From Auanema rhodensis (Eukaryota > Animalia > Nematoda): a stretch of 64,000 bases of DNA. A program made the position numbers and the translations under genes. The stretch lies in the NCBI GenBank assembly GCA_964057225.1, contig OZ059894.1, positions 11,284,001 through 11,348,000 of the forward strand, written 5' to 3'. Positions 276-54,260 of the stretch are shown one piece after another. A model generated the notes under the pieces. The model had not been told where the DNA came from. It made no database searches and saw nothing but the letters and a program-made list of their open reading frames with translations. The first letter of the stretch is position 1. Each line of letters starts with the position of its first letter.

Positions 276-1089
276 ACAGTAAAAAGTCCAATCAAGAGAG
301 AAATTTTTTCAACACATAGTTGTTTTTTTTTAAAATATCATTGTTTTTCCTCATAACTCGGTTTAAACTCGTTCTAACCCGTTGAAATACGTCTAGAAAG
401 TCTTTATAACATGCATATGTATGATAGAACTTCATATTTATTGTAATAGAAAATTTTATTTTCAGACGTCTTGGTTAACAATGATATGTTTTACCCCCTT
501 ATAATTTTTATCATAATGTTCCTTATACGGAACGCTCAATGAAACTTGCTTCCAGAAAAATTTCTTTCTATTTGTTCTTCATATGTACGTAGATACTATA
601 GAGAACTATGATAGAAAACTTTAACATTCACGAAATCATCATTTCTCATTACGCTACGGAGGTTTAAAAAGCTGTGTTTTACTTTATAATAGACCGGAAA
701 ACCCTTGTGTTAAAACTGGACCGTTTTTACACATATAAAAATGTCCCGTATTCGGGACCCTAATGTAACTTTTGATTCCCTATATTTTTTTTCATGAAAT
801 TTACAATCTACTGTAGAAAGAAGAATTATTTTTATAAAAACTGTAAATTTTTGAAAAATGAAAACAAAACGAAAACAAAAACAACTTTTTTTTGAACATT
901 TTCTCACACAAGGGTCCCCCCTTACCTACTTTTTTTCTCATTACTCGTTTCAACCTCATCCGATCACTCTGCAAACATGTTTAATCGTTCTAACTTGTTG
1001 AAATACGTCTTAAAAGTCTAAACAACATGCATATGCATAATAGAAACCACCCGAATAGGCCCCCACGCACTAAACGAGATATATACATT

Positions 1090-1140
1090 ACCAGTATAGT
1101 AATAGAACACATATTGAAGATTAATTCGATAAGAACAATT
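1090..1140 (-). pseudogene. Decayed U2 fragment (nt 39-79) plus CTATACTGGT, present in the spacer of every unit (representative copy)
   Basis: 46/51 identity to 55228-55278; all 5 mismatches are C>T or G>A. Confidence 0.85.
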
Positions 1141-1457
1141 TATTGACGTAGAGAATGTTTGTTCCGAAAAACTACAATATTAAACTATAAAAGTAACAAA
1201 AGCGTAGAGGCAGCAAAGACATGAATAAACATAAATGTAAATACAGAATTACCAGGTAGTACATAAGTATGACAAAAAATTATAAGAAAGCCATGAAAAT
1301 AGAAGGTTTGTGAACAAATGAGAGGTACATCTTTGATCGTATAGTCATTTCTAAACCGTTCGTATGCTGCAGCATCGTCATAAGCGTCACTCAAGTTGAA
1401 TTTCCATGTGTACTACACGATTTTCATTCTTATTGTTACATTCTTTCCCTGAGGGAA

Positions 1458-1604: not shown

Positions 1605-4600
1605 ATGGTTTATTGAATAACTAATGTTATGAAACAATAAATAACCAATAAAAAAGAGCCCAGAATCGGGGAGACGGTATTACCAGTACAACTTAAAACA
1701 GCAAGTGATTAAAAAGTACAAAATAAAACACATTACCAACAGAGGCTAAAACGACTCAAGAGTCGGGGGAGTGGGTTAAAAAAAGTAATGAATAACAAAA
1801 AAAATGAATAATAAAGCAGAACAGTGAAAAGTAAATATCAAGTGCCGCTATGATCAAACAATTTGAGTGCCTACGGCAATAGTGTTAAAAATAAAAAACA
1901 AAATACATGTACCAATGAAGGTCAGAAAGAGAGAAAGAAAAAAGACAAAAATAAGTAATACAAAAAGTAAAAAATATATTACAATCAAATCACAAACAAG
2001 TCAATGGATAATTTCTTCTTCATATTGCCTTACACCAGAAACATGTTCCACGTAGATATTCCTGGCCCACTTGATGGTATCGGCGACGACGAGCTTCTCC
2101 ATTAGCCGGTTGTAGTGGCTGCTGATCTTGAGTGATCGGAGGGCTTGTACGTTGAGCGGGTCCATAGTTCCAAGCATTCCTACGACATATGCTTCTACAC
2201 TAGTCTTATAACCAAGACATTGGTATTGGCTGGCTATGTCAGCATATTTCCTCTCCTTTATCATACGCGCGGCTATCATGGCTTGACGGCGGTTTTCATA
2301 GCTCACTGTAACATCAACGATACTACAGTGTTTTGCGTCATGATCGACCACTACTATGTCAGGTCGGAGTGTACTATTAATGCCAGGAAGAGGCTGGTTA
2401 GTGTAAACTTCTCCGTTTTTAGGCTCTGGCAGGGCTTTGATAAGACGGTCCACGATGTTGTTGTGGCGGAGTTGGATTGCTCTCGTGTGAGAGTGGCAGT
2501 GTCCAAGAACATGTGCAGCAGTTTCGTTGGAGTAACTACACCTGCGGCACTGTTTGTTTCCTTCTCCGTGTCTTCTACAGCCATTGAGCTGGAGAGTATT
2601 AAGTCGAGCCTTGTGGATGAATCGCCAATCAGCAAACCGTATGAAATCTCCCTTCGCCATAAAGTGATTGGACGCTTTGTTGAGCATTGTGACATCAAAG
2701 ACTTTCCCTTGATCCGGTTTTTGAAGAAGGATCCGAAGGTCTTTCAGCCATAATGCACGTCGCAGGCTTCTGTGGCATAGTGAAGGTGTTAACAGTTGGT
2801 TGTTTAGATTGAGTTCTAAACCACTTTCGAGGCATGTCCAGTTAGCGTTGATGAGTTTCTTGAGTTGACGCATCGCTACTCTTACTCTAGTCCAGATGGA
2901 GGAAACATCAGATGTTTCGGTGTCGAAAATGCCATCAACGGAACCGTTGTAATATGCAGCTGTCTCATCGTTACTGGCTTGACGTTTAATCCTTTTTGAT
3001 GCTACTTTTATTGAGTCTTGATGCGCAATATCAGCTACTACAAGATCAGATGACTTCAAAAGTTGGTAGGCATGAGTGACTTCACAGACGTCTGACAGGT
3101 GTTGGAGTCGAGAGAGACCAAGTCCGCCGTAGTTAGTTGGCAGGTAGATTGGTTCAGCACTGGCGTTTGGAGGATAGTGCATCCATCTACGGGCACAGCG
3201 TTTGAGTTCTTTGTCAAAGGCGACTAGTTTACTCTTTGGGACGTGGCCATTCGTCATATGAAAATTAAGGCAGGGCATCAGGAAGGTGCGTACTGCGTCA
3301 GCTTTCTGCCATTCAGCCAGTAAGGATTTGTCAATTTTTTCCAAGTGTTGACTCATGATATTCACTGTTGGAACCGCAGACTTATGTAAATGCATTCCAG
3401 TAGGGATTCCCAGGTGGGAGTAGCTGTCAAATTTGCTGAGAGCGGGTAGAAAGCAGCTCTGAAGCATGTATGAGGCTGTTGATATTTTCCCTTTGTCGAT
3501 CGTCAAAGTGGCGCATTTCGCTGGTTTGAAGGTCAAGCCTGTGAAATTAGCCGCATTTGATGCTGCGTCCAACATTTTCTGTAGATCTTCTGATGATGAG
3601 GAGACCAGGGCAAGGTCATCGGCGTACGCTAGCACAGCGATGTTGTGATTGTGTAGCTTATAGCCTGTAGAGGTTTCCAAGATGGTTTTAATTAGAGGTT
3701 CAATGGCAAGGTTGAACAGGATCGGAGATAGTGGGGATCCTTGTAACACACCTGCGTGAACTGGAATGGTCGAAGTGAGTCCGGAGCCTGTCTGGATTCT
3801 TGTAGAGGCATCTGTGTATAGAGCTCGTACTCGGGATATTGAGGCTTCAGCCATTCCTGACCATCTTAGAACGTCTAGCAGAGTTTCGTGTGGCAGCGAT
3901 CCAAAAGCGTTTGCGAGATCAAGCCAAGCAATTGCAATTTTCTCACGTTTACGTTTAGCGTCTGCAATGGTACTTTGCAACAAAAAGTTGTGTTCCATGC
4001 ATCCAGCTTTGGCCACAAAGCCCTTTTGGGAGGGAGAAAGTCTTTTTTCTGCTCTTGCCCATGTTAGCAGTCGATGCGTAAGACAAGCTGAGTACGTCTT
4101 ACCAATTGTGCACGAAAGTGCTATTGGTCGCCAGTTGTTAATGTCAGCTTTATCACCTTTCTTATGGATGAGGACGGTGGTCGACTCTTTCCAGGAAAAA
4201 GGGATGTGTCCTAGCTTGTGTACGGTGTTAAATATCGCTGCTAATATGTGACCTCCTTGGTCAAATTTCTTCCAGTGCGAGTATCGAAGTCCATCAGCTC
4301 CTGGAGCCGTATCGCTGCAACGTCGTATGCGTTCCCAGACTTCCAAAGGGGTGAAAACACCTTCTAATGGGTCGGTACTAGTTGGCAAATCCGGTCTGGT
4401 GACTGTGATGGGGAGGGCTGGGCCTTGACTGCTGTGAACAGAAAGGAAGTGTTTTTCAACATCTGCAGATGGTATGGTGCAGGTTTCACTTTGTTCTCCG
4501 AGCAGTTGTCGAAAGGCTTTCTTCTTGTTGGCCCTCCAAAGCTTCTGGATCTTCATCGCCTGGGTTTTTTGGTCTTCCTCAGGTTGTGTGTGTGGTCGGC

Positions 4601-5331
4601 GCCTTTGTCGGAAGTTGGGAACTTTGATCATAATGTCAAGAGACTTTCTGATTGTGTCTATCAACTCTTCCAGGACCTGCTCGAGCTCACTTTTGCACAC
4701 TACCTTTTTAATTCTATCCACCCAAATATTTTCAGAGTTTCTATTCGGATCAGGGTCGGCAAAAGATGGTTCTGTACTCGGAACCCTGATCTCGTTGAAT
4801 ATTTCACTCTCTCGCGGAAGGGGGGAAACTTCGGCCTCTGGGGACAAGTCCAGAATTGGGGCCTCAAACAAGCGTACCGTTGATGGAGATCCTTGTTCCT
4901 GTCCACTGGATGATGTTTCCTCCATTGTACGCTCCTCCACGGGCGGGGTGGTCGTCCTTGTGCCTGGTGGGCGGGTGTTCCTGATCCTCCGCAATATAGG
5001 GCGGGAACTGGGCTCTCTCGGAGATAGAGGTGAGATCACCACAGTTTCCTCTATGATGCGGAGGCATCCTTCAGCTTTTTTCTGATGGCTTTTAACGGCC
5101 TTCAGATTGCTGGTGAGGCCACAGGCACGGCACTCAAATTCTACTCCGACCTCATGTTCTCTCCGAAGATGGCGGACGAGACCATTGTGGTCTGAGTAGG
5201 ATCGCGGAATAGGAGCGCAGATTGAACAAGAAAAAGGGCTCTGAAGAGGCACCTTTAGCTTGTAAAGCCCTTGCTCCATCTCTAGCAGATCTAAAGACTT
5301 ACGTAGTACAGTTGCAATATCGATTTAGCCA
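1605..5331 (-). mobile_element. Full-length intact U2-targeting RLE non-LTR retrotransposon (Utopia-like), 3727 bp
   Basis: Single ORF with RT and RLE, 52-nt leader, 396-nt 3' UTR ending AATAAACCAT without poly(A); flanked by U2 sequence on both sides. Confidence 0.95.
2001..5279 (-). CDS. 1092-aa retrotransposon protein: C2H2 and C2HC zinc fingers, reverse transcriptase, CCHC knuckle, PD-(D/E)xK restriction-like endonuclease
   Basis: Motifs CSIC..HLRREH, CRAC..H..C, APGADG, WRPIAL, QKGF, WLDLANAFGS, GVLQGSPLSP, YADD, CRRC..HVLGHC, RHN, RPD..DVTV..K.KY. Confidence 0.96.
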   Translation of the reverse strand: MEQGLYKLKVPLQSPFSCSICAPIPRSYSDHNGLVRHLRREHEVGVEFECRACGLTSNLKAVKSHQKKAEGCLRIIEETVVISPLSPREPSSRPILRRIRNTRPPGTRTTTPPVEERTMEETSSSGQEQGSPSTVRLFEAPILDLSPEAEVSPLPRESEIFNEIRVPSTEPSFADPDPNRNSENIWVDRIKKVVCKSELEQVLEELIDTIRKSLDIMIKVPNFRQRRRPHTQPEEDQKTQAMKIQKLWRANKKKAFRQLLGEQSETCTIPSADVEKHFLSVHSSQGPALPITVTRPDLPTSTDPLEGVFTPLEVWERIRRCSDTAPGADGLRYSHWKKFDQGGHILAAIFNTVHKLGHIPFSWKESTTVLIHKKGDKADINNWRPIALSCTIGKTYSACLTHRLLTWARAEKRLSPSQKGFVAKAGCMEHNFLLQSTIADAKRKREKIAIAWLDLANAFGSLPHETLLDVLRWSGMAEASISRVRALYTDASTRIQTGSGLTSTIPVHAGVLQGSPLSPILFNLAIEPLIKTILETSTGYKLHNHNIAVLAYADDLALVSSSSEDLQKMLDAASNAANFTGLTFKPAKCATLTIDKGKISTASYMLQSCFLPALSKFDSYSHLGIPTGMHLHKSAVPTVNIMSQHLEKIDKSLLAEWQKADAVRTFLMPCLNFHMTNGHVPKSKLVAFDKELKRCARRWMHYPPNASAEPIYLPTNYGGLGLSRLQHLSDVCEVTHAYQLLKSSDLVVADIAHQDSIKVASKRIKRQASNDETAAYYNGSVDGIFDTETSDVSSIWTRVRVAMRQLKKLINANWTCLESGLELNLNNQLLTPSLCHRSLRRALWLKDLRILLQKPDQGKVFDVTMLNKASNHFMAKGDFIRFADWRFIHKARLNTLQLNGCRRHGEGNKQCRRCSYSNETAAHVLGHCHSHTRAIQLRHNNIVDRLIKALPEPKNGEVYTNQPLPGINSTLRPDIVVVDHDAKHCSIVDVTVSYENRRQAMIAARMIKERKYADIASQYQCLGYKTSVEAYVVGMLGTMDPLNVQALRSLKISSHYNRLMEKLVVADTIKWARNIYVEHVSGVRQYEEEIIH

Positions 5332-5426
5332 TTAACCTTATTGTGAACCAATGGAACACATATCGAAGGTTAATTCGATAAGAACGATTACTACACTTTG
5401 ATCTTAGCCAAAAGGCCGAGAAGCGA
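5332..5426 (-). pseudogene. U2: U2 nt 2-96 fused to the element 5' end, without the U2 promoter; abuts an A15 run (5426-5440)
   Basis: ttaaccttatt...gagaagcga, then A run, then spacer ctacaatatt. Confidence 0.92.
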
Positions 5427-5726
5427 AAAAAAAAAAAAAACTACAATATTAAACTATAAAAGTAACAAAAGCGTAGAGGCAGCAAAGACATGAATAAACA
5501 TAAATGTAAATACAGAATTACCAGGTAGTACATAAGTATGACAAAAAATTATAAGAAAGCCATGAAAATAGAAGGTTTGTGAACAAATGAGAGGTACATC
5601 TTTGATCGTATAGTCATTTCTAAACCGTTCGTATGCTGCAGCATCGTCATAAGCGTCACTCAAGTTGAATTTCCATGTGTACTACACGATTTTCATTCTT
5701 ATTGTTACATTCTTTCCCTGAGGGAA

Positions 5727-7027: not shown

Positions 7028-8209
7028 ACAGTAAAAAGTCCAATCAAGAGAGAAATTTTTTCAACACATAGTTGTTTTTTTTTTAAATATCATTGTTTTT
7101 CCTCATAACTCGGTTTAAACTCGTTCTAACCCGTTGAAATACGTCTAGAAAGTCTTTATAACATGCATATGTATGATAGAACTTCATATTTATTGTAATA
7201 GAAAATTTTATTTTCAGACGTCTTGGTTAACAATGATATGTTTTACCCCCTTATAATTTTTATCATAATGTTCCTTATACGGAACGCTCAATGAAACTTG
7301 CTTCCAGAAAAATTTCTTTCTATTTTTTCTTCATATGTACGTAGATACTATAGAGAACTATGATAGAAAACTTTAACATTCACGAAATCATCATTTCTCA
7401 TTACGCTACGGAGGTTTAAAAAGCTGTGTTTTACCTTATAATAGACCGGAAAACCCTTGTGTTAAAACTGGACCGTTTTTACACATATAAAAATGTCCCG
7501 TATTCGGGACCCTAATGTAACTTTTGATTCCCTATATTTTTTTTCATGAAATTTACAATCTACTGTAGAAAGAAGAATTATTTTTATAAAAACTGTAAAT
7601 TTTTGAAAAATGAAAACAAAACGAAAACAAAAACAACTTTTTTTTGAACATTTTCTCACACAAGGGTCCCCCCTTACCTACTTTTTTTCTCATTACTCGT
7701 TTCAACCTCATCCGATCACTCTGCAAACATGTTTAATCGTTCTAACTTGTTGAAATACGTCTTAAAAGTCTAAACAACATGCATATGCATAATAGAAACC
7801 ACCCGAATAGGCCCCCACGCACTAAACGAGATATATACATTACCAGTATAGTAATAGAACACATATTGAAGATTAATTCGATAAGAACAATTTATTGACG
7901 TAGAGAATGTTTGTTCCGAAAAACTACAATATTAAACTATAAAAGTAACAAAAGCGTAGAGGCAGCAAAGACATGAATAAACATAAATGTAAATACAGAA
8001 TTACCAGGTAGTACATAAGTATGACAAAAAATTATAAGAAAGCCATGAAAATAGAAGGTTTGTGAACAAATGAGAGGTACATCTTTGATCGTATAGTCAT
8101 TTCTAAACCGTTCGTATGCTGCAGCATCGTCATAAGCGTCACTCAAGTTGAATTTCCATGTGTACTACACGATTTTCATTCTTATTGTTACATTCTTTCC
8201 CTGAGGGAA

Positions 8210-8393
8210 TGGGCCGTTCCCGCCAGCAGTGCAAGAGCGGGTCGACCCGTGAGGTGGAGCTAGCAAGCCAGCATCTACCTCAAGTCTCAAAAATCGGTTA
8301 ACCTTATTGTGAACCAATGGAACACATATCGAAGGTTAATTCGATAAGAACGATTACTACACTTTGATCTTAGCCAAAAGGCCGAGAAGCGAT
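8210..8393 (-). ncRNA. U2: U2 snRNA gene
   Basis: Matches 5727-5910. Confidence 0.96.
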
Positions 8394-8836
8394 ACAGCAT
8401 AGCCATGAGTATCAAAGACATCAAGCAAATGTATCGTACTTGTTACGAGTGCACTCTCTCATTTGAATATAAAAGTGTGGTTTGACAATCTTGACTGTAC
8501 AGGTCATAAATGGCTCATATAAACTGTGGATTTACTCAACTTTTGGACTTATTTTTTTCTTATTCGAAGCGCTGCACTTTTTTCTATTCTTTTTATTCAA
8601 ATACTTGTATATAGTTTTATATGTACGGTTGCAAAGTTTCCGAATATTTTATATATTTTTATACAATAATTAGGAGAAGGTTAATACAATGAAATCTCCC
8701 AACTTTACAGTGTTTGTATTGCTTACAGTATCTAGAACAACCACTCTTGTAATATTAGAGCACATATCAATCAACAACTTTTTTTTAGTTATCAAAGCTT
8801 TTTTATTTCTTCAAAAAATTTCAAATAAAATATAAA

Positions 8837-8955
8837 AGCTTACGACACCCGGGATTCCCAAGCCGTCTCCGATCCAAGTACTAACCGGGCCCAACGTTGC
8901 TTGACTTGCCAGATCGGACGGGATGGCGTACTTTCAACGTGGTATGGTCGTAAGC
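8837..8955 (-). rRNA. 5S: 5S rRNA gene (unit with a single 5S)
   Basis: Same 119-mer; the 360-bp sub-repeat is collapsed. Confidence 0.97.
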
Positions 8956-9097
8956 AATGTCATATTCTTCATTATCAGTTATATCACTCTAAATCTTGTT
9001 GTTAATAGATACGACCACAAAGAAAACAACAGGAACAGTAACAATAACAAAAAAAATTTTTTTTTCACCTATGTGTCTAAAGGTTAGCCATGTATCC

Positions 9098-9161
<64 letters not shown>

Positions 9162-10343
9162 ACAGTAAAAAGTCCAATCAAGAGAGAAATTTTTTCAACA
9201 CATAGTTGTTTTTTTTTTAAATATCATTGTTTTTCCTCATAACTCGGTTTAAACTCGTTCTAACCCGTTGAAATACGTCTAGAAAGTCTTTATAACATGC
9301 ATATGTATGATAGAACTTCATATTTATTGTAATAGAAAATTTTATTTTCAGACGTCTTGGTTAACAATGATATGTTTTACCCCCTTATAATTTTTATCAT
9401 AATGTTCCTTATACGGAACGCTCAATGAAACTTGCTTCCAGAAAAATTTCTTTCTATTTTTTCTTCATATGTACGTAGATACTATAGAGAACTATGATAG
9501 AAAACTTTAACATTCACGAAATCATCATTTCTCATTACGCTACGGAGGTTTAAAAAGCTGTGTTTTACCTTATAATAGACCGGAAAACCCTTGTGTTAAA
9601 ACTGGACCGTTTTTACACATATAAAAATGTCCCGTATTCGGGACCCTAATGTAACTTTTGATTCCCTATATTTTTTTTCATGAAATTTACAATCTACTGT
9701 AGAAAGAAGAATTATTTTTATAAAAACTGTAAATTTTTGAAAAATGAAAACAAAACGAAAACAAAAACAACTTTTTTTTGAACATTTTCTCACACAAGGG
9801 TCCCCCCTTACCTACTTTTTTTCTCATTACTCGTTTCAACCTCATCCGATCACTCTGCAAACATGTTTAATCGTTCTAACTTGTTGAAATACGTCTTAAA
9901 AGTCTAAACAACATGCATATGCATAATAGAAACCACCCGAATAGGCCCCCACGCACTAAACGAGATATATACATTACCAGTATAGTAATAGAACACATAT
10001 TGAAGATTAATTCGATAAGAACAATTTATTGACGTAGAGAATGTTTGTTCCGAAAAACTACAATATTAAACTATAAAAGTAACAAAAGCGTAGAGGCAGC
10101 AAAGACATGAATAAACATAAATGTAAATACAGAATTACCAGGTAGTACATAAGTATGACAAAAAATTATAAGAAAGCCATGAAAATAGAAGGTTTGTGAA
10201 CAAATGAGAGGTACATCTTTGATCGTATAGTCATTTCTAAACCGTTCGTATGCTGCAGCATCGTCATAAGCGTCACTCAAGTTGAATTTCCATGTGTACT
10301 ACACGATTTTCATTCTTATTGTTACATTCTTTCCCTGAGGGAA

Positions 10344-12987: not shown

Positions 12988-15706
12988 ATGGTTTATTGAA
13001 TAACTAATGTTATGAAACAATAAATAACCAATAAAAAAGAGCCCAGAATCGGGGAGACGGTATTACCAGTACAACTTAAAACAGCAAGTGATTAAAAAGT
13101 ACAAAATAAAACACATTACCAACAGAGGCTAAAACGACTCAAGAGTCGGGGGAGTGGGTTAAAAAAAGTAATGAATAACAAAAAAAATGAATAATAAAGC
13201 AGAACAGTGAAAAGTAAATATCAAGTGCCGCTATGATCAAACAATTTGAGTGCCTACGGCAATGGTGTTAAAAATAAACAACAAAATACATGTACCAATG
13301 AAGGTCAGAAAGAGAGAAAGAAAAAAGACAAAAATAAGTAATACAAAAAGTAAAAAATATATTACAATCAAATCACAAACAAGTCAATGGATAATTTCTT
13401 CTTCATACTGCCTTACACCAGAAACATGTTCCACGTAGATATTCCTGGCCCACTTGATGGTATCGGCGACGACGAGCTTCTCCATTAGCCGGTTGTAGTG
13501 GCTGCTGATCTTGAGTGATCGGAGGGCTTGTACGTTGAGCGGGTCCATAGTTCCAAGCATTCCTACGACATACGCTTCTACACTAGTCTTATAACCAAGA
13601 CATTGGTATTGGCTGGCTATGTCAGCATATTTCCTCTCCTTTATCATACGCGCGGCTATCATGGCTTGTCGGCGGTTTTCATAGCTCACTGTAACATCAA
13701 CGATACTACAGTGTTTTGCGTCATGATCGACCACTACTATGTCAGGTCGGAGTGTACTATTAATGCCAGGAAGAGGCTGGTTAGTGTAAACTTCTCCGTT
13801 TTTAGGCTCTGGCAGGGCTTTGATAAGACGGTCCACGATGTTGTTGTGGCGGAGTTGGATTGCTCTCGTGTGAAAGTGGCAGTGTCCAAGAACATGTGCA
13901 GCAGTTTCGTTGGGGTAACTACACCTGCGGCACTGTTTGTTTCCTTCTCCGTGTCTTCTACAGCCATTGAGCTGGAGAGTATTAAGTCGAGCCTTGTGGA
14001 TGAATCGCCAATCAGCAAACCGTATGAAATCTCCCTTCGCCATAAAGTGATTGGACGCTTTGTTGAGCATTGTGACATCAAAGACTTTCCCTTGATCCGG
14101 TTTTTGAAGAAGGATCCGAAGGTCTTTCAGCCATAATGCACGTCGCAGGCTTCTGTGGCATAGTGAAGGTGTTAACAGTTGGTTGTTTAGATTGAGTTCT
14201 AAACCACTTTCGAGGCATGTCCAGTTAGCGTTGATGAGTTTCTTGAGTTGACGCATCGCTACTCTTACTCTAGTCCAGATGGAGGAAACATCAGATGTTT
14301 CGGTGTCGAAAATGCCATCAACGGAACCGTTGTAATATGCAGCTGTCTCATCGTTACTGGCTTGACGTTTAATCCTTTTTGATGCTACTTTTATTGAGTC
14401 TTGATGCGCAATATCAGCTACTACAAGATCAGATGACTTCAAAAGTTGGTAGGCATGAGTGACTTCACAGACGTCTGACAGGTGTTGGAGTCGAGAGAGA
14501 CCAAGTCCGCCGTAGTTAGTTGGCAGGTAGATTGGTTCAGCACTGGCGTTTGGAGGATAGTGCATCCATCTACGGGCACAGCGTTTGAGTTCTTTGTCAA
14601 AGGCGACTAGTTTACTCTTTGGGACGTGGCCATTCGTCATATGAAAATTAAGGCAGGGCATCAGGAAGGTGCGTACTGCGTCAGCTTTCTGCCATTCAGC
14701 CAGTAAGGATTTGTCAATTTTTTCCAAGTGTTGACTCATGATATTCACTGTTGGAACCGCAGACTTATGTAAATGCATTCCAGTAGGGATTCCCAGGTGG
14801 GAGTAGCTGTCAAATTTGCTGAGAGCGGGTAGAAAGCAGCTCTGAAGCATGTATGAGGCTGTTGATATTTTCCCTTTGTCGATCGTCAAAGTGGCGCATT
14901 TCGCTGGTTTGAAGGTCAAGCCTGTGAAATTAGCCGCATTTGATGCTGCGTCCAACATTTTCTGTAGATCTTCTGATGATGAGGAGACCAGGGCAAGGTC
15001 ATCGGCGTACGCTAGCACAGCGATGTTGTGATTGTGTAGCTTATAGCCTGTAGAGGTTTCCAAGATGGTTTTAATTAGAGGTTCAATGGCAAGGTTGAAC
15101 AGGATCGGAGATAGTGGGGATCCTTGTAACACACCTGCGTGAACTGGAATGGTCGAAGTGAGTCCGGAGCCTGTCTGGATTCTTGTAGAGGCATCTGTGT
15201 ATAGAGCTCGTACTCGGGATATTGAGGCTTCAGCCATTCCTGACCATCTTAGAACGTCTAGCAGAGTTTCGTGTGGCAGCGATCCAAAAGCGTTTGCGAG
15301 ATCAAGCCAAGCAATTGCAATTTTCTCACGTTTACGTTTAGCGTCTGCAATGGTACTTTGCAACAAAAAGTTGTGTTCCATGCATCCAGCTTTGGCCACA
15401 AAGCCCTTTTGGGAGGGAGAAAGTCTTTTTTCTGCTCTTGCCCATGTTAGCAGTCGATGCGTAAGACAAGCTGAGTACGTCTTACCAATTGTGCACGAAA
15501 GTGCTATTGGTCGCCAGTTGTTAATGTCAGCTTTATCACCTTTCTTATGGATGAGGACGGTGGTCGACTCTTTCCAGGAAAAAGGGATGTGTCCTAGCTT
15601 GTGTACGGTGTTAAATATCGCTGCTAATATGTGACCTCCTTGGTCAAATTTCTTCCAGTGCGAGTATCGAAGTCCATCAGCTCCTGGAGCCGTATCGCTG
15701 CAACGT
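12988..15706 (-). mobile_element. 5'-truncated Utopia-like copy (2.7 kb)
   Basis: Colinear with 1605-4323; ends at ...gctgcaacgt. Confidence 0.94.
13384..15706 (-). pseudogene. Truncated RT-RLE coding region lacking the N-terminus
   Basis: ORF track 13384-15399 matches the C-terminal 671 aa. Confidence 0.9.
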
Positions 15707-15767
15707 AGTAATCGTTCTTATCGAATTAACCTTCGATATGTGTTCCATTGGTTCACAATAAGGTTAA
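15705..15767 (+). pseudogene. U2: U2 nt 34-96 heading the inverted element
   Basis: gtagtaatcgttc...aaggttaa, then tggctaaatcg. Confidence 0.9.
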
Positions 15768-18700
15768 TGGCTAAATCGATATTGCAACTGTACTACGTAA
15801 GTCTTTAGATCTGCTAGAGATGGAGCAAGGGCTTTACAAGCTAAAGGTGCCTCTTCAGAGCCCTTTTTCTTGTTCAATCTGCGCTCCTATTCCGCGATCC
15901 TACTCAGACCACAATGGTCTCGTCCGCCATCTTCGGAGAGAACATGAGGTCGGAGTAGAATTTGAGTGCCGTGCCTGTGGCCTCACCAGCAATCTGAAGG
16001 CCGTTAAAAGCCATCAGAAAAAAGCTGAAGGATGCCTCCGCATCATAGAGGAAACTGTGGTGATCTCACCTCTATCTCCGAGAGAGCCCAGTTCCCGCCC
16101 TATATTGCGGAGGATCAGGAACACCCGCCCACCAGGCACAAGGACGACCACCCCGCCCGTGGAGGAGCGTACAATGGAGGAAACATCATCCAGTGGACAG
16201 GAACAAGGATCTCCATCAACGGTACGCTTGTTTGAGGCCCCAATTCTGGACTTGTCCCCAGAGGCCGAAGTTTCCCCCCTTCCGCGAGAGAGTGAAATAT
16301 TCAACGAGATCAGGGTTCCGAGTACAGAACCATCTTTTGCCGACCCTGATCCGAATAGAAACTCTGAAAATATTTGGGTGGATAGAATTAAAAAGGTAGT
16401 GTGCAAAAGTGAGCTCGAGCAGGTCCTGGAAGAGTTGATAGACACAATCAGAAAGTCTCTTGACATTATGATCAAAGTTCCCAACTTCCGACAAAGGCGC
16501 CGACCACACACACAACCTGAGGAAGACCAAAAAACCCAGGCGATGAAGATCCAGAAGCTTTGGAGGGCCAACAAGAAGAAAGCCTTTCGACAACTGCTCG
16601 GAGAACAAAGTGAAACCTGCACCATACCATCTGCAGATGTTGAAAAACACTTCCTTTCTGTTCACAGCAGTCAAGGCCCAGCCCTCCCCATCACAGTCAC
16701 CAGACCGGATTTGCCAACTAGTACCGACCCATTAGAAGGTGTTTTCACCCCTTTGGAAGTCTGGGAACGCATACGACGTTGCAGCGATACGGCTCCAGGA
16801 GCTGATGGACTTCGATACTCGCACTGGAAGAAATTTGACCAAGGAGGTCACATATTAGCAGCGATATTTAACACCGTACACAAGCTAGGACACATCCCTT
16901 TTTCCTGGAAAGAGTCGACCACCGTCCTCATCCATAAGAAAGGTGATAAAGCTGACATTAACAACTGGCGACCAATAGCACTTTCGTGCACAATTGGTAA
17001 GACGTACTCAGCTTGTCTTACGCATCGACTGCTAACATGGGCAAGAGCAGAAAAAAGACTTTCTCCCTCCCAAAAGGGCTTTGTGGCCAAAGCTGGATGC
17101 ATGGAACACAACTTTTTGTTGCAAAGTACCATTGCAGACGCTAAACGTAAACGTGAGAAAATTGCAATTGCTTGGCTTGATCTCGCAAACGCTTTTGGAT
17201 CGCTGCCACACGAAACTCTGCTAGACGTTCTAAGATGGTCAGGAATGGCTGAAGCCTCAATATCCCGAGTACGAGCTCTATACACAGATGCCTCTACAAG
17301 AATCCAGACAGGCTCCGGACTCACTTCGACCATTCCAGTTCACGCAGGTGTGTTACAAGGATCCCCACTATCTCCGATCCTGTTCAACCTTGCCATTGAA
17401 CCTCTAATTAAAACCATCTTGGAAACCTCTACAGGCTATAAGCTACACAATCACAACATCGCTGTGCTAGCGTACGCCGATGACCTTGCCCTGGTCTCCT
17501 CATCATCAGAAGATCTACAGAAAATGTTGGACGCAGCATCAAATGCGGCTAATTTCACAGGCTTGACCTTCAAACCAGCGAAATGCGCCACTTTGACGAT
17601 CGACAAAGGGAAAATATCAACAGCCTCATACATGCTTCAGAGCTGCTTTCTACCCGCTCTCAGCAAATTTGACAGCTACTCCCACCTGGGAATCCCTACT
17701 GGAATGCATTTACATAAGTCTGCGGTTCCAACAGTGAATATCATGAGTCAACACTTGGAAAAAATTGACAAATCCTTACTGGCTGAATGGCAGAAAGCTG
17801 ACGCAGTACGCACCTTCCTGATGCCCTGCCTTAATTTTCATATGACGAATGGCCACGTCCCAAAGGGAAAGTCTTTGATGTCACAATGCTCAACAAAGCG
17901 TCCAATCACTTTATGGCGAAGGGAGATTTCATACGGTTTGCTGATTGGCGATTCATCCACAAGGCTCGACTTAATACTCTCCAGCTCAATGGCTGTAGAA
18001 GACACGGAGAAGGAAACAAACAGTGCCGCAGGTGTAGTTACCCCAACGAAACTGCTGCACATGTTCTTGGACACTGCCACTTTCACACGAGAGCAATCCA
18101 ACTCCGCCACAACAACATCGTGGACCGTCTTATCAAAGCCCTGCCAGAGCCTAAAAACGGAGAAGTTTACACTAACCAGCCTCTTCCTGGCATTAATAGT
18201 ACACTCCGACCTGACATAGTAGTGGTCGATCATGACGCAAAACACTGTAGTATCGTTGATGTTACAGTGAGCTATGAAAACCGCCGACAAGCCATGATAG
18301 CCGCGCGTATGATAAAGGAGAGGAAATATGCTGACATAGCCAGCCAATACCAATGTCTTGGTTATAAGACTAGTGTAGAAGCGTATGTCGTAGGAATGCT
18401 TGGAACTATGGACCCGCTCAACGTACAAGCCCTCCGATCACTCAAGATCAGCAGCCACTACAACCGGCTAATGGAGAAGCTCGTCGTCGCCGATACCATC
18501 AAGTGGGCCAGGAATATCTACGTGGAACATGTTTCTGGTGTAAGGCAGTATGAAGAAGAAATTATCCATTGACTTGTTTGTGATTTGATTGTAATATATT
18601 TTTTACTTTTTGTATTACTTATTTTTGTCTTTTTTCTTTCTCTCTTTCTGACCTTCATTGGTACATGTATTTTGTTTTTTATTTTTAACACTATTGCCGT

Positions 18701-18968
18701 AGGCACTCAAATTGTTTGATCATAGCGGCACTTGATATTTACTTTTCACTGTTCTGCTTTATTATTCATTTTTTTTGTTATTCATTACTTTTTTTAACCC
18801 ACTCCCCCGACTCTTGAGTCGTTTTAGCCTCTGTTGGTAATGTGTTTTATTTTGTACTTTTTAATCACTTGCTGTTTTAAGTTGTACTGGTAATACCGTC
18901 TCCCCGATTCTGGGCTCTTTTTTATTGGTTATTTATTGTATCATAACATTAGTTATTCAATAAACCAT
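15768..18968 (+). mobile_element. Utopia-like copy with both ends intact and a 526-bp internal deletion
   Basis: Junction cccaaag/ggaaagtc near 17865 with AAG microhomology. Confidence 0.94.
15820..18572 (+). pseudogene. Frameshifted retrotransposon ORF
   Basis: ORFs 15820-18219 and 17886-18572; 2753 nt versus 3279 nt in the intact copy. Confidence 0.92.
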
Positions 18969-19115
18969 TAATCGTTCTTATCGAATTAACCTTCGATATG
19001 TGTTCCATTGGTTCACAATAAGGTTAACCGATTTTTGAGACTTGAGGTAGATGCTGGCTTGCTAGCTCCACCTCACGGGTCGACCCGCTCTTGCACTGCT
19101 GGCGGGAACGGCCCA
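18969..19115 (+). pseudogene. U2: U2 3' part (nt 38-184), inverted
   Basis: aataaaccat/taatcgttctt junction. Confidence 0.93.
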
Positions 19116-20293
19116 TTCCCTCAGGGAAAGAATGTAACAATAAGAATGAAAATCGTGTAGTACACATGGAAATTCAACTTGAGTGACGCTTATGACGATG
19201 CTGCAGCATACGAACGGTTTAGAAATGACTATACGATCAAAGATGTACCTCTCATTTGTTCACAAACCTTCTATTTTCATGGCTTTCTTATAATTTTTTG
19301 TCATACTTATGTACTACCTGGTAATTCTGTATTTACATTTATGTTTATTCATGTCTTTGCTGCCTCTACGCTTTTGTTACTTTTATAGTTTAATATTGTA
19401 GTTTTTCGGAACAAACATTCTCTACGTCAATAAATTGTTCTTATCGAATTAATCTTCAATATGTGTTCTATTACTATACTGGTAATGTATATATCTCGTT
19501 TAGTGCGTGGGGGCCTATTCGGGTGGTTTCTATTATGCATATGCATGTTGTTTAGACTTTTAAGACGTATTTCAACAAGTTAGAACGATTAAACATGTTT
19601 GCAGAGTGATCGGATGAGGTTGAAACGAGTAATGAGAAAAAAAGTAGGTAAGGGGGGACCCTTGTGTGAGAAAATGTTCAAAAAAAAGTTGTTTTTGTTT
19701 TCGTTTTGTTTTCATTTTTCAAAAATTTACAGTTTTTATAAAAATAATTCTTCTTTCTACAGTAGATTGTAAATTTCATGAAAAAAAATATAGGGAATCA
19801 AAAGTTACATTAGGGTCCCGAATACGGGACATTTTTATATGTGTAAAAACGGTCCAGTTTTAACACAAGGGTTTTCCGGTCTATTATAAGGTAAAACACA
19901 GCTTTTTAAACCTCCGTAGCGTAATGAGAAATGATGATTTCGTGAATGTTAAAGTTTTCTATCATAGTTCTCTATAGTATCTACGTACATATGAAGAAAA
20001 AATAGAAAGAAATTTTTCTGGAAGCAAGTTTCATTGAGCGTTCCGTATAAGGAACATTATGATAAAAATTATAAGGGGGTAAAACATATCATTGTTAACC
20101 AAGACGTCTGAAAATAAAATCAACAACAGGAACAGTAACAAATGAAATGCCCAAACTTTACAGTGTTCGAGTTATTTACAGTATCTAAGACTACCTCTGT
20201 CGTGTTATTAGAGCAAACATTCGATTAACAACAACTTTTTTTTAGTTATCAAAGCTTTTTTATTTCTTCAAAAAATTTCAAATAAAATATAAA

Positions 20294-29364: not shown

Positions 29365-31339
29365 ATGGTTTATTGAATAACTAATGTTATGAAACAATAA
29401 ATAACCAATAAAAAAGAGCCCAGAATCGGGGAGACGGTATTACCAGTACAACTTAAAACAGCAAGTGATTAAAAAGTACAAAATAAAACACATTACCAAC
29501 AGAGGCTAAAACGACTCAAGAGTCGGGGGAGTGGGTTAAAAAAAGTAATGAATAACAAAAAAAATGAATAATAAAGCAGAACAGTGAAAAGTAAATATCA
29601 AGTGCCGCTATGATCAAACAATTTGAGTGCCTACGGCAATAGTGTTAAAAATAAAAAACAAAATACATGTACCAATGAAGGTCAGAAAGAGAGAAAGAAA
29701 AAAGACAAAAATAAGTAATACAAAAAGTAAAAAATATATTACAATCAAATCACAAACAAGTCAATGGATAATTTCTTCTTCATACTGCCTTACACCAGAA
29801 ACATGTTCCACGTAGATATTCCTGGCCCACTTGATGGTATCGGCGACGACGAGCTTCTCCATTAGCCGGTTGTAGTGGCTGCTGATCTTGAGTGATCGGA
29901 GGGCTTGTACGTTGAGCGGGTCCATAGTTCCAAGCATTCCTACGACATACGCTTCTACACTAGTCTTATAACCAAGACATTGGTATTGGCTGGCTATGTC
30001 AGCATATTTCCTCTCCTTTATCATACGCGCGGCTATCATGGCTTGTCGGCGGTTTTCATAGCTCACTGTAACATCAACGATACTACAGTGTTTTGCGTCA
30101 TGATCGACCACTACTATGTCAGGTCGGAGTGTACTATTAATGCCAGGAAGAGGCTGGTTAGTGTAAACTTCTCCGTTTTTAGGCTCTGGCAGGGCTTTGA
30201 TAAGACGGTCCACGATGTTGTTGTGGCGGAGTTGGATTGCTCTCGTGTGAAAGTGGCAGTGTCCAAGAACATGTGCAGCAGTTTCGTTGGGGTAACTACA
30301 CCTGCGGCACTGTTTGTTTCCTTCTCCGTGTCTTCTACAGCCATTGAGCTGGAGAGTATTAAGTCGAGCCTTGTGGATGAATCGCCAATCAGCAAACCGT
30401 ATGAAATCTCCCTTCGCCATAAAGTGATTGGACGCTTTGTTGAGCATTGTGACATCAAAGACTTTCCCTTGATCCGGTTTTTGAAGAAGGATCCGAAGGT
30501 CTTTCAGCCATAATGCACGTCGCAGGCTTCTGTGGCATAGTGAAGGTGTTAACAGTTGGTTGTTTAGATTGAGTTCTAAACCACTTTCGAGGCATGTCCA
30601 GTTAGCGTTGATGAGTTTCTTGAGTTGACGCATCGCTACTCTTACTCTAGTCCAGATGGAGGAAACATCAGATGTTTCGGTGTCGAAAATGCCATCAACG
30701 GAACCGTTGTAATATGCAGCTGTCTCATCGTTACTGGCTTGACGTTTAATCCTTTTTGATGCTACTTTTATTGAGTCTTGATGCGCAATATCAGCTACTA
30801 CAAGATCAGATGACTTCAAAAGTTGGTAGGCATGAGTGACTTCACAGACGTCTGACAGGTGTTGGAGTCGAGAGAGACCAAGTCCGCCGTAGTTAGTTGG
30901 CAGGTAGATTGGTTCAGCACTGGCGTTTGGAGGATAGTGCATCCATCTACGGGCACAGCGTTTGAGTTCTTTGTCAAAGGCGACTAGTTTACTCTTTGGG
31001 ACGTGGCCATTCGTCATATGAAAATTAAGGCAGGGCATCAGGAAGGTGCGTACTGCGTCAGCTTTCTGCCATTCAGCCAGTAAGGATTTGTCAATTTTTT
31101 CCAAGTGTTGACTCATGATATTCACTGTTGGAACCGCAGACTTATGTAAATGCATTCCAGTAGGGATTCCCAGGTGGGAGTAGCTGTCAAATTTGCTGAG
31201 AGCGGGTAGAAAGCAGCTCTGAAGCATGTATGAGGCTGTTGATATTTTCCCTTTGTCGATCGTCAAAGTGGCGCATTTCGCTGGTTTGAAGGTCAAGCCT
31301 GTGAAATTAGCCGCATTTGATGCTGCGTCCAACATTTTC
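29365..31339 (-). mobile_element. 5'-truncated Utopia-like copy (1975 bp; ORF remnant 29761-31339, YADD absent)
   Basis: Ends aacattttc/acggagg, fused to spacer. Confidence 0.94.
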
Positions 31340-34792: not shown

Positions 34793-36767
34793 ATGGTTTA
34801 TTGAATAACTAATGTTATGAAACAATAAATAACCAATAAAAAAGAGCCCAGAATCGGGGAGACGGTATTACCAGTACAACTTAAAACAGCAAGTGATTAA
34901 AAAGTACAAAATAAAACACATTACCAACAGAGGCTAAAACGACTCAAGAGTCGGGGGAGTGGGTTAAAAAAAGTAATGAATAACAAAAAAAATGAATAAT
35001 AAAGCAGAACAGTGAAAAGTAAATATCAAGTGCCGCTATGATCAAACAATTTGAGTGCCTACGGCAATAGTGTTAAAAATAAAAAACAAAATACATGTAC
35101 CAATGAAGGTCAGAAAGAGAGAAAGAAAAAAGACAAAAATAAGTAATACAAAAAGTAAAAAATATATTACAATCAAATCACAAACAAGTCAATGGATAAT
35201 TTCTTCTTCATACTGCCTTACACCAGAAACATGTTCCACGTAGATATTCCTGGCCCACTTGATGGTATCGGCGACGACGAGCTTCTCCATTAGCCGGTTG
35301 TAGTGGCTGCTGATCTTGAGTGATCGGAGGGCTTGTACGTTGAGCGGGTCCATAGTTCCAAGCATTCCTACGACATACGCTTCTACACTAGTCTTATAAC
35401 CAAGACATTGGTATTGGCTGGCTATGTCAGCATATTTCCTCTCCTTTATCATACGCGCGGCTATCATGGCTTGTCGGCGGTTTTCATAGCTCACTGTAAC
35501 ATCAACGATACTACAGTGTTTTGCGTCATGATCGACCACTACTATGTCAGGTCGGAGTGTACTATTAATGCCAGGAAGAGGCTGGTTAGTGTAAACTTCT
35601 CCGTTTTTAGGCTCTGGCAGGGCTTTGATAAGACGGTCCACGATGTTGTTGTGGCGGAGTTGGATTGCTCTCGTGTGAAAGTGGCAGTGTCCAAGAACAT
35701 GTGCAGCAGTTTCGTTGGGGTAACTACACCTGCGGCACTGTTTGTTTCCTTCTCCGTGTCTTCTACAGCCATTGAGCTGGAGAGTATTAAGTCGAGCCTT
35801 GTGGATGAATCGCCAATCAGCAAACCGTATGAAATCTCCCTTCGCCATAAAGTGATTGGACGCTTTGTTGAGCATTGTGACATCAAAGACTTTCCCTTGA
35901 TCCGGTTTTTGAAGAAGGATCCGAAGGTCTTTCAGCCATAATGCACGTCGCAGGCTTCTGTGGCATAGTGAAGGTGTTAACAGTTGGTTGTTTAGATTGA
36001 GTTCTAAACCACTTTCGAGGCATGTCCAGTTAGCGTTGATGAGTTTCTTGAGTTGACGCATCGCTACTCTTACTCTAGTCCAGATGGAGGAAACATCAGA
36101 TGTTTCGGTGTCGAAAATGCCATCAACGGAACCGTTGTAATATGCAGCTGTCTCATCGTTACTGGCTTGACGTTTAATCCTTTTTGATGCTACTTTTATT
36201 GAGTCTTGATGCGCAATATCAGCTACTACAAGATCAGATGACTTCAAAAGTTGGTAGGCATGAGTGACTTCACAGACGTCTGACAGGTGTTGGAGTCGAG
36301 AGAGACCAAGTCCGCCGTAGTTAGTTGGCAGGTAGATTGGTTCAGCACTGGCGTTTGGAGGATAGTGCATCCATCTACGGGCACAGCGTTTGAGTTCTTT
36401 GTCAAAGGCGACTAGTTTACTCTTTGGGACGTGGCCATTCGTCATATGAAAATTAAGGCAGGGCATCAGGAAGGTGCGTACTGCGTCAGCTTTCTGCCAT
36501 TCAGCCAGTAAGGATTTGTCAATTTTTTCCAAGTGTTGACTCATGATATTCACTGTTGGAACCGCAGACTTATGTAAATGCATTCCAGTAGGGATTCCCA
36601 GGTGGGAGTAGCTGTCAAATTTGCTGAGAGCGGGTAGAAAGCAGCTCTGAAGCATGTATGAGGCTGTTGATATTTTCCCTTTGTCGATCGTCAAAGTGGC
36701 GCATTTCGCTGGTTTGAAGGTCAAGCCTGTGAAATTAGCCGCATTTGATGCTGCGTCCAACATTTTC
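34793..36767 (-). mobile_element. 5'-truncated Utopia-like copy, same truncation as 29365-31339
   Basis: Identical junction and 526-aa ORF remnant. Confidence 0.94.
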
Positions 36768-37715: not shown

Positions 37716-39690
37716 ATGGTTTATTGAATAACTAATGTTATGAAACAATAAATAACCAATAAAAAAGAGCCCAGAATCGGGGAGACGGTATTACCAGTAC
37801 AACTTAAAACAGCAAGTGATTAAAAAGTACAAAATAAAACACATTACCAACAGAGGCTAAAACGACTCAAGAGTCGGGGGAGTGGGTTAAAAAAAGTAAT
37901 GAATAACAAAAAAAATGAATAATAAAGCAGAACAGTGAAAAGTAAATATCAAGTGCCGCTATGATCAAACAATTTGAGTGCCTACGGCAATAGTGTTAAA
38001 AATAAAAAACAAAATACATGTACCAATGAAGGTCAGAAAGAGAGAAAGAAAAAAGACAAAAATAAGTAATACAAAAAGTAAAAAATATATTACAATCAAA
38101 TCACAAACAAGTCAATGGATAATTTCTTCTTCATACTGCCTTACACCAGAAACATGTTCCACGTAGATATTCCTGGCCCACTTGATGGTATCGGCGACGA
38201 CGAGCTTCTCCATTAGCCGGTTGTAGTGGCTGCTGATCTTGAGTGATCGGAGGGCTTGTACGTTGAGCGGGTCCATAGTTCCAAGCATTCCTACGACATA
38301 CGCTTCTACACTAGTCTTATAACCAAGACATTGGTATTGGCTGGCTATGTCAGCATATTTCCTCTCCTTTATCATACGCGCGGCTATCATGGCTTGTCGG
38401 CGGTTTTCATAGCTCACTGTAACATCAACGATACTACAGTGTTTTGCGTCATGATCGACCACTACTATGTCAGGTCGGAGTGTACTATTAATGCCAGGAA
38501 GAGGCTGGTTAGTGTAAACTTCTCCGTTTTTAGGCTCTGGCAGGGCTTTGATAAGACGGTCCACGATGTTGTTGTGGCGGAGTTGGATTGCTCTCGTGTG
38601 AAAGTGGCAGTGTCCAAGAACATGTGCAGCAGTTTCGTTGGGGTAACTACACCTGCGGCACTGTTTGTTTCCTTCTCCGTGTCTTCTACAGCCATTGAGC
38701 TGGAGAGTATTAAGTCGAGCCTTGTGGATGAATCGCCAATCAGCAAACCGTATGAAATCTCCCTTCGCCATAAAGTGATTGGACGCTTTGTTGAGCATTG
38801 TGACATCAAAGACTTTCCCTTGATCCGGTTTTTGAAGAAGGATCCGAAGGTCTTTCAGCCATAATGCACGTCGCAGGCTTCTGTGGCATAGTGAAGGTGT
38901 TAACAGTTGGTTGTTTAGATTGAGTTCTAAACCACTTTCGAGGCATGTCCAGTTAGCGTTGATGAGTTTCTTGAGTTGACGCATCGCTACTCTTACTCTA
39001 GTCCAGATGGAGGAAACATCAGATGTTTCGGTGTCGAAAATGCCATCAACGGAACCGTTGTAATATGCAGCTGTCTCATCGTTACTGGCTTGACGTTTAA
39101 TCCTTTTTGATGCTACTTTTATTGAGTCTTGATGCGCAATATCAGCTACTACAAGATCAGATGACTTCAAAAGTTGGTAGGCATGAGTGACTTCACAGAC
39201 GTCTGACAGGTGTTGGAGTCGAGAGAGACCAAGTCCGCCGTAGTTAGTTGGCAGGTAGATTGGTTCAGCACTGGCGTTTGGAGGATAGTGCATCCATCTA
39301 CGGGCACAGCGTTTGAGTTCTTTGTCAAAGGCGACTAGTTTACTCTTTGGGACGTGGCCATTCGTCATATGAAAATTAAGGCAGGGCATCAGGAAGGTGC
39401 GTACTGCGTCAGCTTTCTGCCATTCAGCCAGTAAGGATTTGTCAATTTTTTCCAAGTGTTGACTCATGATATTCACTGTTGGAACCGCAGACTTATGTAA
39501 ATGCATTCCAGTAGGGATTCCCAGGTGGGAGTAGCTGTCAAATTTGCTGAGAGCGGGTAGAAAGCAGCTCTGAAGCATGTATGAGGCTGTTGATATTTTC
39601 CCTTTGTCGATCGTCAAAGTGGCGCATTTCGCTGGTTTGAAGGTCAAGCCTGTGAAATTAGCCGCATTTGATGCTGCGTCCAACATTTTC
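37716..39690 (-). mobile_element. 5'-truncated Utopia-like copy, same truncation
   Basis: Identical junction; 2923 bp after the previous copy. Confidence 0.94.
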
Positions 39691-41796: not shown

Positions 41797-42978
41797 ACAG
41801 TAAAAAGTCCAATCAAGAGAGAAATTTTTTCAACACATAGTTGTTTTTTTTTTAAATATCATTGTTTTTCCTCATAACTCGGTTTAAACTCGTTCTAACC
41901 CGTTGAAATACGTCTAGAAAGTCTTTATAACATGCATATGTATGATAGAACTTCATATTTATTGTAATAGAAAATTTTATTTTCAGACGTCTTGGTTAAC
42001 AATGATATGTTTTACCCCCTTATAATTTTTATCATAATGTTCCTTATACGGAACGCTCAATGAAACTTGCTTCCAGAAAAATTTCTTTCTATTTTTTCTT
42101 CATATGTACGTAGATACTATAGAGAACTATGATAGAAAACTTTAACATTCACGAAATCATCATTTCTCATTACGCTACGGAGGTTTAAAAAGCTGTGTTT
42201 TACCTTATAATAGACCGGAAAACCCTTGTGTTAAAACTGGACCGTTTTTACACATATAAAAATGTCCCGTATTCGGGACCCTAATGTAACTTTTGATTCC
42301 CTATATTTTTTTTCATGAAATTTACAATCTACTGTAGAAAGAAGAATTATTTTTATAAAAACTGTAAATTTTTGAAAAATGAAAACAAAACGAAAACAAA
42401 AACAACTTTTTTTTGAACATTTTCTCACACAAGGGTCCCCCCTTACCTACTTTTTTTCTCATTACTCGTTTCAACCTCATCCGATCACTCTGCAAACATG
42501 TTTAATCGTTCTAACTTGTTGAAATACGTCTTAAAAGTCTAAACAACATGCATATGCATAATAGAAACCACCCGAATAGGCCCCCACGCACTAAACGAGA
42601 TATATACATTACCAGTATAGTAATAGAACACATATTGAAGATTAATTCGATAAGAACAATTAATTGACGTAGAGAATGTTTGTTCCGAAAAACTACAATA
42701 TTAAACTATAAAAGTAACAAAAGCGTAGAGGCAGCAAAGACATGAATAAACATAAATGTAAATACAGAATTACCAGGTAGTACATAAGTATGACAAAAAA
42801 TTATAAGAAAGCCATGAAAATAGAAGGTTTGTGAACAAATGAGAGGTACATCTTTGATCGTATAGTCATTTCTAAACCGTTCGTATGCTGCAGCATCGTC
42901 ATAAGCGTCACTCAAGTTGAATTTCCATGTGTACTACACGATTTTCATTCTTATTGTTACATTCTTTCCCTGAGGGAA

Positions 42979-53500: not shown

Positions 53501-54260
53501 GTCTTCCTCAGGTTGTGTGTGTGGTCGGCGCCTTTGTCGGAAGTTGGGAACTTTGATCATAATGTCAAGAGACTTTCTGATTGTGTCTACCAACTCTTCC
53601 AGGACCTGCTCGAGCTCACTTTTGCACACTACCTTTTTAATTCTATCCACCCAAATATTTTCAGAGTTTCTATTCGGATCAGGGTCGGCAAAAGATGGTT
53701 CTGTACTCGGAACCCTGATCTCGTTGAATATTTCACTCTCTCGCGGAAGGGGGGAAACTTCGGCCTCTGGGGACAAGTCCAGAATTGGGGCCTCAAACAA
53801 GCGTACCGTTGATGGAGATCCTTGTTCCTGTCCACTGGATGATGTTTCCTCCATTGTACGCTCCTCCACGGGCGGGGTGGTCGTCCTTGTGCCTGGTGGG
53901 CGGGTGTTCCTGATCCTCCGCAATATAGGGCGGGAACTGGGCTCTCTCGGAGATAGAGGTGAGATCACCACAGTTTCCTCTATGATGCGGAGACATCCTT
54001 CAGCTTTTTTCTGATGGCTTTTAACGGCCTTCAGATTGCTGGTGAGGCCACAGGCACGGCACTCAAATTCTACTCTGACCTCATGTTCTCTCCGAAGATG
54101 GCGGACGAGACCATTGTGGTCTGAGTAGGATCGCGGAATAGGAGCGCAGATTGAACACGAAAAAGGGCTCTGAAGAGGCACCTTTAGCTTGTAAAGCCCT
54201 TGCTCCATCTCTAGCAGATCTAAAGACTTACGTAGTACAGTTGCAATATCGATTTAGCCA
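50551..54260 (-). mobile_element. Full-length, more diverged Utopia-like copy with a nonsense mutation
   Basis: Both ends intact; 3' UTR indels; several amino-acid changes relative to the 1605 copy. Confidence 0.95.
50930..54208 (-). pseudogene. Retrotransposon ORF split by CAA>TAA at 51650-51652 (codon 853), which removes the endonuclease
   Basis: ORFs 51650-54208 and 50930-51616 are in the same frame; total 3279 nt. Confidence 0.93.

Follow-up and report, generated by a model that had tools for sequence, protein, structure and literature searches.

A decayed U2–insert junction fragment in the spacer of a homogenised U2–5S gene array

Results

The U2–5S Array and Its Utopia Insertions

The window, the whole stretch of 64 kb of Auanema rhodensis DNA analyzed here, contains 14 intact 190-nt U2 genes, 9 partial U2 matches, and 30 5S rRNA genes as identified with Rfam, and all but one of these U2 and 5S matches lie on the minus strand. 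Self-comparison of the window resolved a tandem unit of 2483 bp that carries one U2 and two 5S genes; the units are 99.0–99.8% identical to each other, with 97.9% identity across a shorter unit that has a single 5S gene (Table 1). Positions in U2 are numbered on the 190-nt U2 as defined by Rfam; the U2 of this array has one extra A at nt 31.

A 3.7-kb element with an ORF of 1092 aa interrupts several U2 genes in the window. The ORF contains a Pfam RVT_1 domain (E = 5e-28) and matches solved R2 proteins in two stretches (E = 3.5e-67), a similarity at the level of the whole protein; together these place it with the reverse transcriptases of the R2/NeSL group. In a protein word search its closest relatives, which are 55–56% identical, lie on metagenome contigs of 3.6–4.6 kb, and its named nematode relatives, including proteins of Globodera, Panagrolaimus, and Diploscapter, are 44–53% identical. 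Utopia elements are non-LTR retrotransposons that are specific for U2 snRNA genes and carry a restriction-like endonuclease (Kojima and Jurka 2015, PMC4640811), and their insertion site in Phytophthora is U2 nt 39 (PMC4640811). In the window, the element tail ends in ...CCAT, and the first U2 base after the tail is nt 38 in each of the eight 3′ junctions, which matches the published Utopia site to within 1–2 nt. The Utopia 5′ end comes directly after U2 nt 96, at 5331/5332 and at 54260/54261, and the two full-length copies (50551–54260 and 1605–5331), which are 1.5% different overall, have an identical 30-base 5′ end immediately after this nucleotide.

The array bears further traces of insertion and rearrangement. 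In front of the first full-length Utopia, region 5332–5435 holds U2 nt 2–96 and then some additional bases, after which the unit coordinates jump by ~2 kb. A 5′-truncated Utopia of ~1975 bp is present in three units (29365–31339, 34793–36767, and 37716–39690) with the same joining point to the spacer, and all three units lack the U2 5′ half together with about 1.5 kb of spacer; these represent one dead insertion multiplied by array exchange, not three insertions. There is also an inverted segment at 12988–20120, in which a minus-strand truncated Utopia stands head to head with a U2 fragment (15705–15767) and a plus-strand Utopia (ORF 15820–18219), followed by an inverted U2 3′ part (18969–19121) and 1 kb of inverted spacer that includes an inverted copy (19474–19483) of the spacer relic described below.

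A Non-Coding Rider in Tandem with Utopia

One U2 gene at 50.5–55.3 kb holds two tandem insertions, a Utopia and a 918-bp non-coding insert, which we call the rider. The order of the segments is Utopia (50551–54260), U2 nt 38–96 (54261–54319), rider (54320–55237), and U2 nt 1–79 (55238–55316), such that the stretch of U2 found on both sides of the insertion is 59 bp for Utopia and 42 bp for the rider. This is the one live rider copy in the window. Its longest stop-free stretch is 83 codons and its 739-bp body is unrelated to Utopia. The remaining 179 bp form a tail (54320–54498) that is 98.9% identical to the tail of the distant Utopia (1605–1783) and only 96.1% identical to that of the Utopia it adjoins (50551–50729). 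When the rider was scanned against Rfam at E values up to 1, U2 was the sole match, and no ribozyme family, HDV-like ribozymes included, was detected. The rider body also holds a 53-nt direct repeat (54616–54785; rider 453–505 and 572–622, 81% identity). A weak inverted similarity between rider 599–634 and spacer 446–479 has p of about 0.03 and loses significance once the number of tests is taken into account.

Table 1. Coordinates of the array features, insertions, and relic copies in the 64-kb window
Feature	Position	Strand	Remarks
First-10-rider-bases copy in spacer	1090–1099	−	10/10 to 55228–55237
Decayed U2 nt 39–79 in spacer	1100–1140	−	36/41, five G/C-to-A/T transitions
Site equivalent to U2 nt 38	1141	−	sense A in 19 units, T (= U2 nt 38) in unit at 42662
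Spacer between U2 3′ end and relic	1142–1451	−	no detectable relation to U2, rider, or Utopia
69-bp spacer block	979–1045	.	84% like 361–429, 44 nt from relic
U2 nt 38–190, gene split by Utopia	1452–1604	−	identical to intact U2
Full-length Utopia-type retrotransposon	1605–5331	−	ORF 2001–5279, 1092 aa
Single-5S unit	8204–10337		2134 bp, one 5S gene where other units have two
Relic starts, other copies (1–6)	7842, 9976, 12473, 19474(+), 21417, 23894		
Relic starts, other copies (7–12)	26371, 28850, 31773, 34278, 37201, 40124		
Relic starts, other copies (13–18)	45092, 47561, 50036, 57244, 59711, 62197		
Variant relic copy, U2 nt 38–79	42611–42662	−	
Second full-length Utopia	50551–54260	−	in tandem with rider
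Live tandem junction, U2 nt 38–96 between rider tail and next Utopia 5′ end	54261–54319	−	
Rider, 918 bp, non-coding	54320–55237	−	739-bp own body + 179-bp tail
Live reference junction: U2 nt 39–79, then first 10 rider bases	55228–55278	−	
U2 nt 1–79 in front of rider	55238–55316	−	identical to intact U2; Rfam match

The Spacer Contains a Decayed Copy of the U2–Rider Junction

A 51-base piece of the spacer, hereafter the relic, aligns without gaps to the live junction between U2 and the rider, with 46 of the 51 bases identical (1090–1140 against 55228–55278; on the U2-sense strand, 1140–1090 against 55278–55228). The alignment reproduces both observations of an earlier, sequence-only reading of this DNA, namely the 46/51 match and mismatches that are all C>T or G>A. 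The U2-derived part of the relic, 1100–1140, is the sole significant U2-like piece of the spacer (blastn E = 1e-9, nhmmer E = 1e-4). At the breakpoint, U2 nt 79, which the relic and the live junction have in common, the relic departs from the gene: beyond it, intact U2 agrees with the spacer at only 3 of 10 positions, whereas the start of the rider agrees at all 10, just as that reading had described for U2 nt 39–79 and the first 10 bases of the insert. A 10/10 match at one fixed position has a chance probability of about 5e-7. Moreover, the 10-mer occurs 21 times in the window, in 20 relics and in the live junction, against an expectation of 0.06 from shuffles, and allowing one mismatch added no sites in the window. 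The rarity of the 10-mer and its complete match beyond the breakpoint thus indicate that the shared breakpoint reflects homology and not chance. At the level of sequence, these data support the view that the spacer piece is homologous to the junction between U2 nt 79 and the insert and not to intact U2. A U2 retropseudogene, in contrast, would hold the U2 5′ or 3′ end and short direct repeats, while the relic has only nt 38/39–79 and no other U2 pieces were found in the spacer.

The five differences, at U2 nt 42, 59, 64, 75, and 79, are all transitions, and at each of them the live junction, like the intact U2 gene, has G or C and the spacer has A or T. Changes thus affect 5 of the 18 G/C sites and none of the 33 A/T sites of the spacer copy (Fisher p = 0.004). 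Because the live junction and the functional gene share the same U2 sequence without a difference, the comparison supports the spacer copy as the derived, decayed one. At nt 64 the G-to-A change disrupts a base pair in stem-loop IIa and has no compensating change, and so no RNA constraint is visible in the relic.

The Relic Is Fixed in the Array and Ends at the Utopia Site

In 20 of the 21 units the relic is found at a constant distance of 311 nt below the U2 3′ end, and its 51 bases are identical in all 20 copies. The remaining unit has a deletion of roughly 2 kb at 5427–5435, next to the Utopia 5′ end; the statement of the sequence-only reading that every array unit carries the relic is accordingly fair for the window, with this one deleted unit as the exception.

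The left edge of the relic falls at U2 nt 38/39, which is where U2 resumes after all eight element tails, a coincidence with a chance of about 3/79. The neighboring site, equivalent to U2 nt 38, differs in a single unit (Table 1), and this T at 42662 is the sole substitution among 20 copies of about 666 nt each (~13,000 bases, ungapped). For the only variant to fall on that site and with that base has a chance of about 1/666 × 1/3, and the simplest account is that it may be the ancestral state kept in one unit. Given the position of the left edge and the restoration of nt 38 at 42662, the relic most likely consisted originally of U2 nt 38–79 and the start of the rider. Within the window, a left edge at nt 38 together with an element 5′ end on the right is found only in tandem junctions, such as that at 54261–54319.

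The Flanks of the Relic Do Not Resemble the Elements above Chance

The similarity does not extend beyond the relic. Wide local alignments under lenient and strict scoring, each with shuffles, of spacer 1141–1451 and 78–1079 against the rider, Utopia, and the rest of U2 found nothing beyond the 51 bases, the shuffle z scores of the flanks against the insert lying between −1.3 and 0.7. Extensions anchored at both edges of the relic gave no significant match to the rider body, to the tails, or to U2 nt 1–38, and there is no similarity to the rider body after base 10. Confined to the terminal 30–60 nt, the upstream flank gave p = 0.03–0.1 against the Utopia tail, in two short matches that need a 7-nt gap, and p = 0.1–0.4 against the rider tail. 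The alignment of spacer to insert and Utopia with a shuffle test, which the sequence-only reading had proposed, thus left the flanks at the chance level (z about 0), and its impression that the continuation of the relic (tattga...aatgtt) weakly resembles the element 3′ end was not confirmed: the likeness reaches p of about 0.03–0.4 with the 7-nt gap and is absent in the wider searches. A 10-base seed formed by the relic plus 3 bases against the Utopia tail was rejected as a chance match (extension test p = 0.56–0.95). Searches elsewhere in the spacer found no second, older relic, and tblastn with the ORF and 90 relatives found no remnants of Utopia protein.

The relic island is truly 51–52 bases long. 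As it is only 9.8% decayed, flanks of the same family and the same age should be obvious, yet none is recognizable; their absence calls for deletions, another lineage of elements, or the insertion of a short piece. One feature of the spacer bears on this choice. The 69-bp block close to the relic is one copy of an old direct repeat, the other copy of which lies at 361–429 (Table 1), and the sequence flanking the lower copy, 436–461, aligns with 1138–1164 just beyond the relic at 20 of 26 positions (p about 0.01). Judged from this alignment, the upper copy may contain an additional stretch of about 92 nt, 1046–1137, that takes in the relic, in which case the paralogue at 361–429 would show the site without a relic.

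Discussion

Collectively, these comparisons make it probable that the relic is a neutral, decayed piece of a U2(38–79)/rider junction that derives, most simply, from a tandem insertion and was spread by concerted evolution. The source would have been a piece composed of U2 nt 38–79 and the first rider bases, a form that is found in the array only between tandem elements at the Utopia site. Such a piece would have come to lie 311 nt downstream of an intact U2 in one unit, where it would have lost its neighbors by deletion and gathered G/C-to-A/T transitions. Unequal exchange and gene conversion among units, and not transposition, would then have carried it to essentially every unit. Three routes into the spacer fit the data: decay in place of a dead, element-filled U2 copy combined with deletions, capture of a short piece, and insertion of rider RNA in a manner that spared U2. 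The sequence-only reading had proposed that the homogenized unit descends from one that held a tandem insertion junction; the tandem junction itself fares well, as it is the only configuration seen in the window that has both edges of the relic, whereas an origin in place is weakened by flanks that resemble no element above chance.

Within the alternatives to a tandem insertion in the spacer, the one that survives best, although we regard it as unlikely, is that no element was ever present there and that the repair of a break took up a short stretch of rider DNA or cDNA as filler. The captured piece would have comprised U2 nt 38–79 and the start of the rider, perhaps with the next 44 nt. In favor of this model, both flanks of the relic are unrelated to any element, and the alignment of the paralogue flank (436–461) with 1138–1164 reads as though 1046–1137 were extra; a possible empty-site paralogue of this kind (979–1045/361–429) favors capture of a short piece over a tandem insertion in place. 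However, the alignment that suggests an empty site was picked post hoc and is short and AT-rich. The rider has no match to the 44 nt that separate the relic from the block, and neither a target duplication nor any other mark of the event is visible.

A second alternative, which we consider improbable, is that a rider RNA whose first base was U2 nt 38 integrated below an intact U2, sparing the gene and generating a target duplication of roughly 460 bp, and that a later deletion removed what followed the first 10 bases of the rider. The RNA is conjectured to have come from the downstream member of a tandem, freed where the upstream element forms its 3′ end, so that the left edge of the relic would be the RNA 5′ end. 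Such an insertion explains both a left edge at nt 38 without an upstream tail and the intact U2 that lies 311 nt upstream, but it would take two rare events, neither the duplicated flank nor U2 nt 80–190 has left a trace below the relic, the RNA 5′ end is itself conjectural, and no ribozyme family matched the rider. The more general form of this idea, that rider RNA truly begins at U2 nt 38, as the left edge of the relic would then record, and that tandem riders are freed from a U2-promoted cotranscript by cleavage at the 3′ end of the upstream element and are able to integrate outside U2, is doubtful. If it were true, the relic, together with whether sister species have or lack it, would date a long-lived partnership of Utopia with non-coding riders, the riders sharing one inherited U2 head.

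It is very unlikely that a diverged U2 paralogue natively carried the ten bases after nt 79 and was the ancestor of both the rider front and the spacer piece. In the Rfam alignment a stem of four pairs, replacing stem-loop IIb, can still be formed by the bases that follow nt 79, as would suit such a paralogue, but the rider has no Sm site or 3′ stem-loops after nt 79 and Rfam aligns nothing further, and the start of the spacer piece at nt 38, the Utopia site, would not be explained by a pseudogene of a paralogue. The sequence-only reading had itself named a native U2 paralogue as the explanation that would overturn it, and no such variant is present among the 24 U2 hits in the window. Least credible of all is that the likeness beyond U2 is due to chance or that the spacer was the source of the bases at the live 55.2-kb junction, the second a conversion that the same reading had already thought less likely: nothing but the shortness of the 10-base match speaks for either, chance is opposed by the 10/10 agreement at a fixed position, and copying is excluded for 41 of the 51 bases, as the live U2 part has the undecayed sequence of the gene and the spacer copy does not.

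The relic carries implications for the age of the join between U2 and the rider. It is 9.8% decayed, the two full Utopia copies are 1.5% apart, and the rider tail is 1.1% from a Utopia tail. Since the relic is fixed in the homogenized unit, the junction is older than the present elements, and the contrast of 9.8% with 1.5% and 1.1% indicates that the join of head and body is much older than the tails now in use; by this measure of divergence, the join between U2 nt 79 and the rider is several times older than the present Utopia and rider copies. These values suggest that the join is inherited, not made anew at each insertion, and that in riders an old front persists while the tail is renewed. 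The earlier view of the passenger family as old and as having a defined 5′ end is therefore upheld with regard to age, the junction predating the present elements, while a defined 5′ end of the family stays putative, with two instances, one live and one relic.

Tandem Utopia insertions in U2 genes and nematode hosts of these elements have been published (PMC4640811). The elements described here resemble those families in their R2-type reverse transcriptase protein and in a precise 3′ junction within the branch-site-binding region of U2. They differ in that the published families have no target duplication or one of 20 bp, as opposed to 59 bp or 42 bp here, and that paper mentions neither a non-coding partner nor a homogenized spacer relic (PMC4640811). 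No published report of a Utopia rider was found in the literature. The closest parallels come from R2. The R2 SIDEs are short R2 elements that have internal deletions and are non-autonomous (Eickbush and Eickbush 2012, PMC3414825), and the rider is like them in being non-coding, in keeping the 3′ end of a site-specific element, and in sitting at the target of that element. However, its 739-bp body has no relation to Utopia, and the rider is thus not a simple internal deletion. Uniform 5′ junctions of R2 are set by host-gene sequence carried on the element RNA (Eickbush et al. 2013, PMC3774820). In both systems the join stays constant between copies as host sequence travels along, and the relic shows the nt 79 join to be inherited; in contrast to R2, the rider has no HDV-like ribozyme, and the host sequence overlaps the downstream side of the target. 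Finally, in Bacillus rossius dead R2 copies are reported to be spread by rDNA turnover (PMC4370867). This is similar to the multiplication of a dead remnant by array dynamics and not by transposition proposed here, although the remnants in that insect lie in the target gene, whereas here a 51-base remnant lies in the spacer of nearly all units.

The relic is real but modest. It adds one more case to a familiar class, that of transposon scars, here brought to light by homogenization of the array, and is not a new kind of system. What it provides is a time order inside an array that otherwise erases its own history, for the join between U2 and the rider predates the last homogenization of the spacer. 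As a marker, it would date the rider family once scored as present or absent at the corresponding position of the spacer in related worms.
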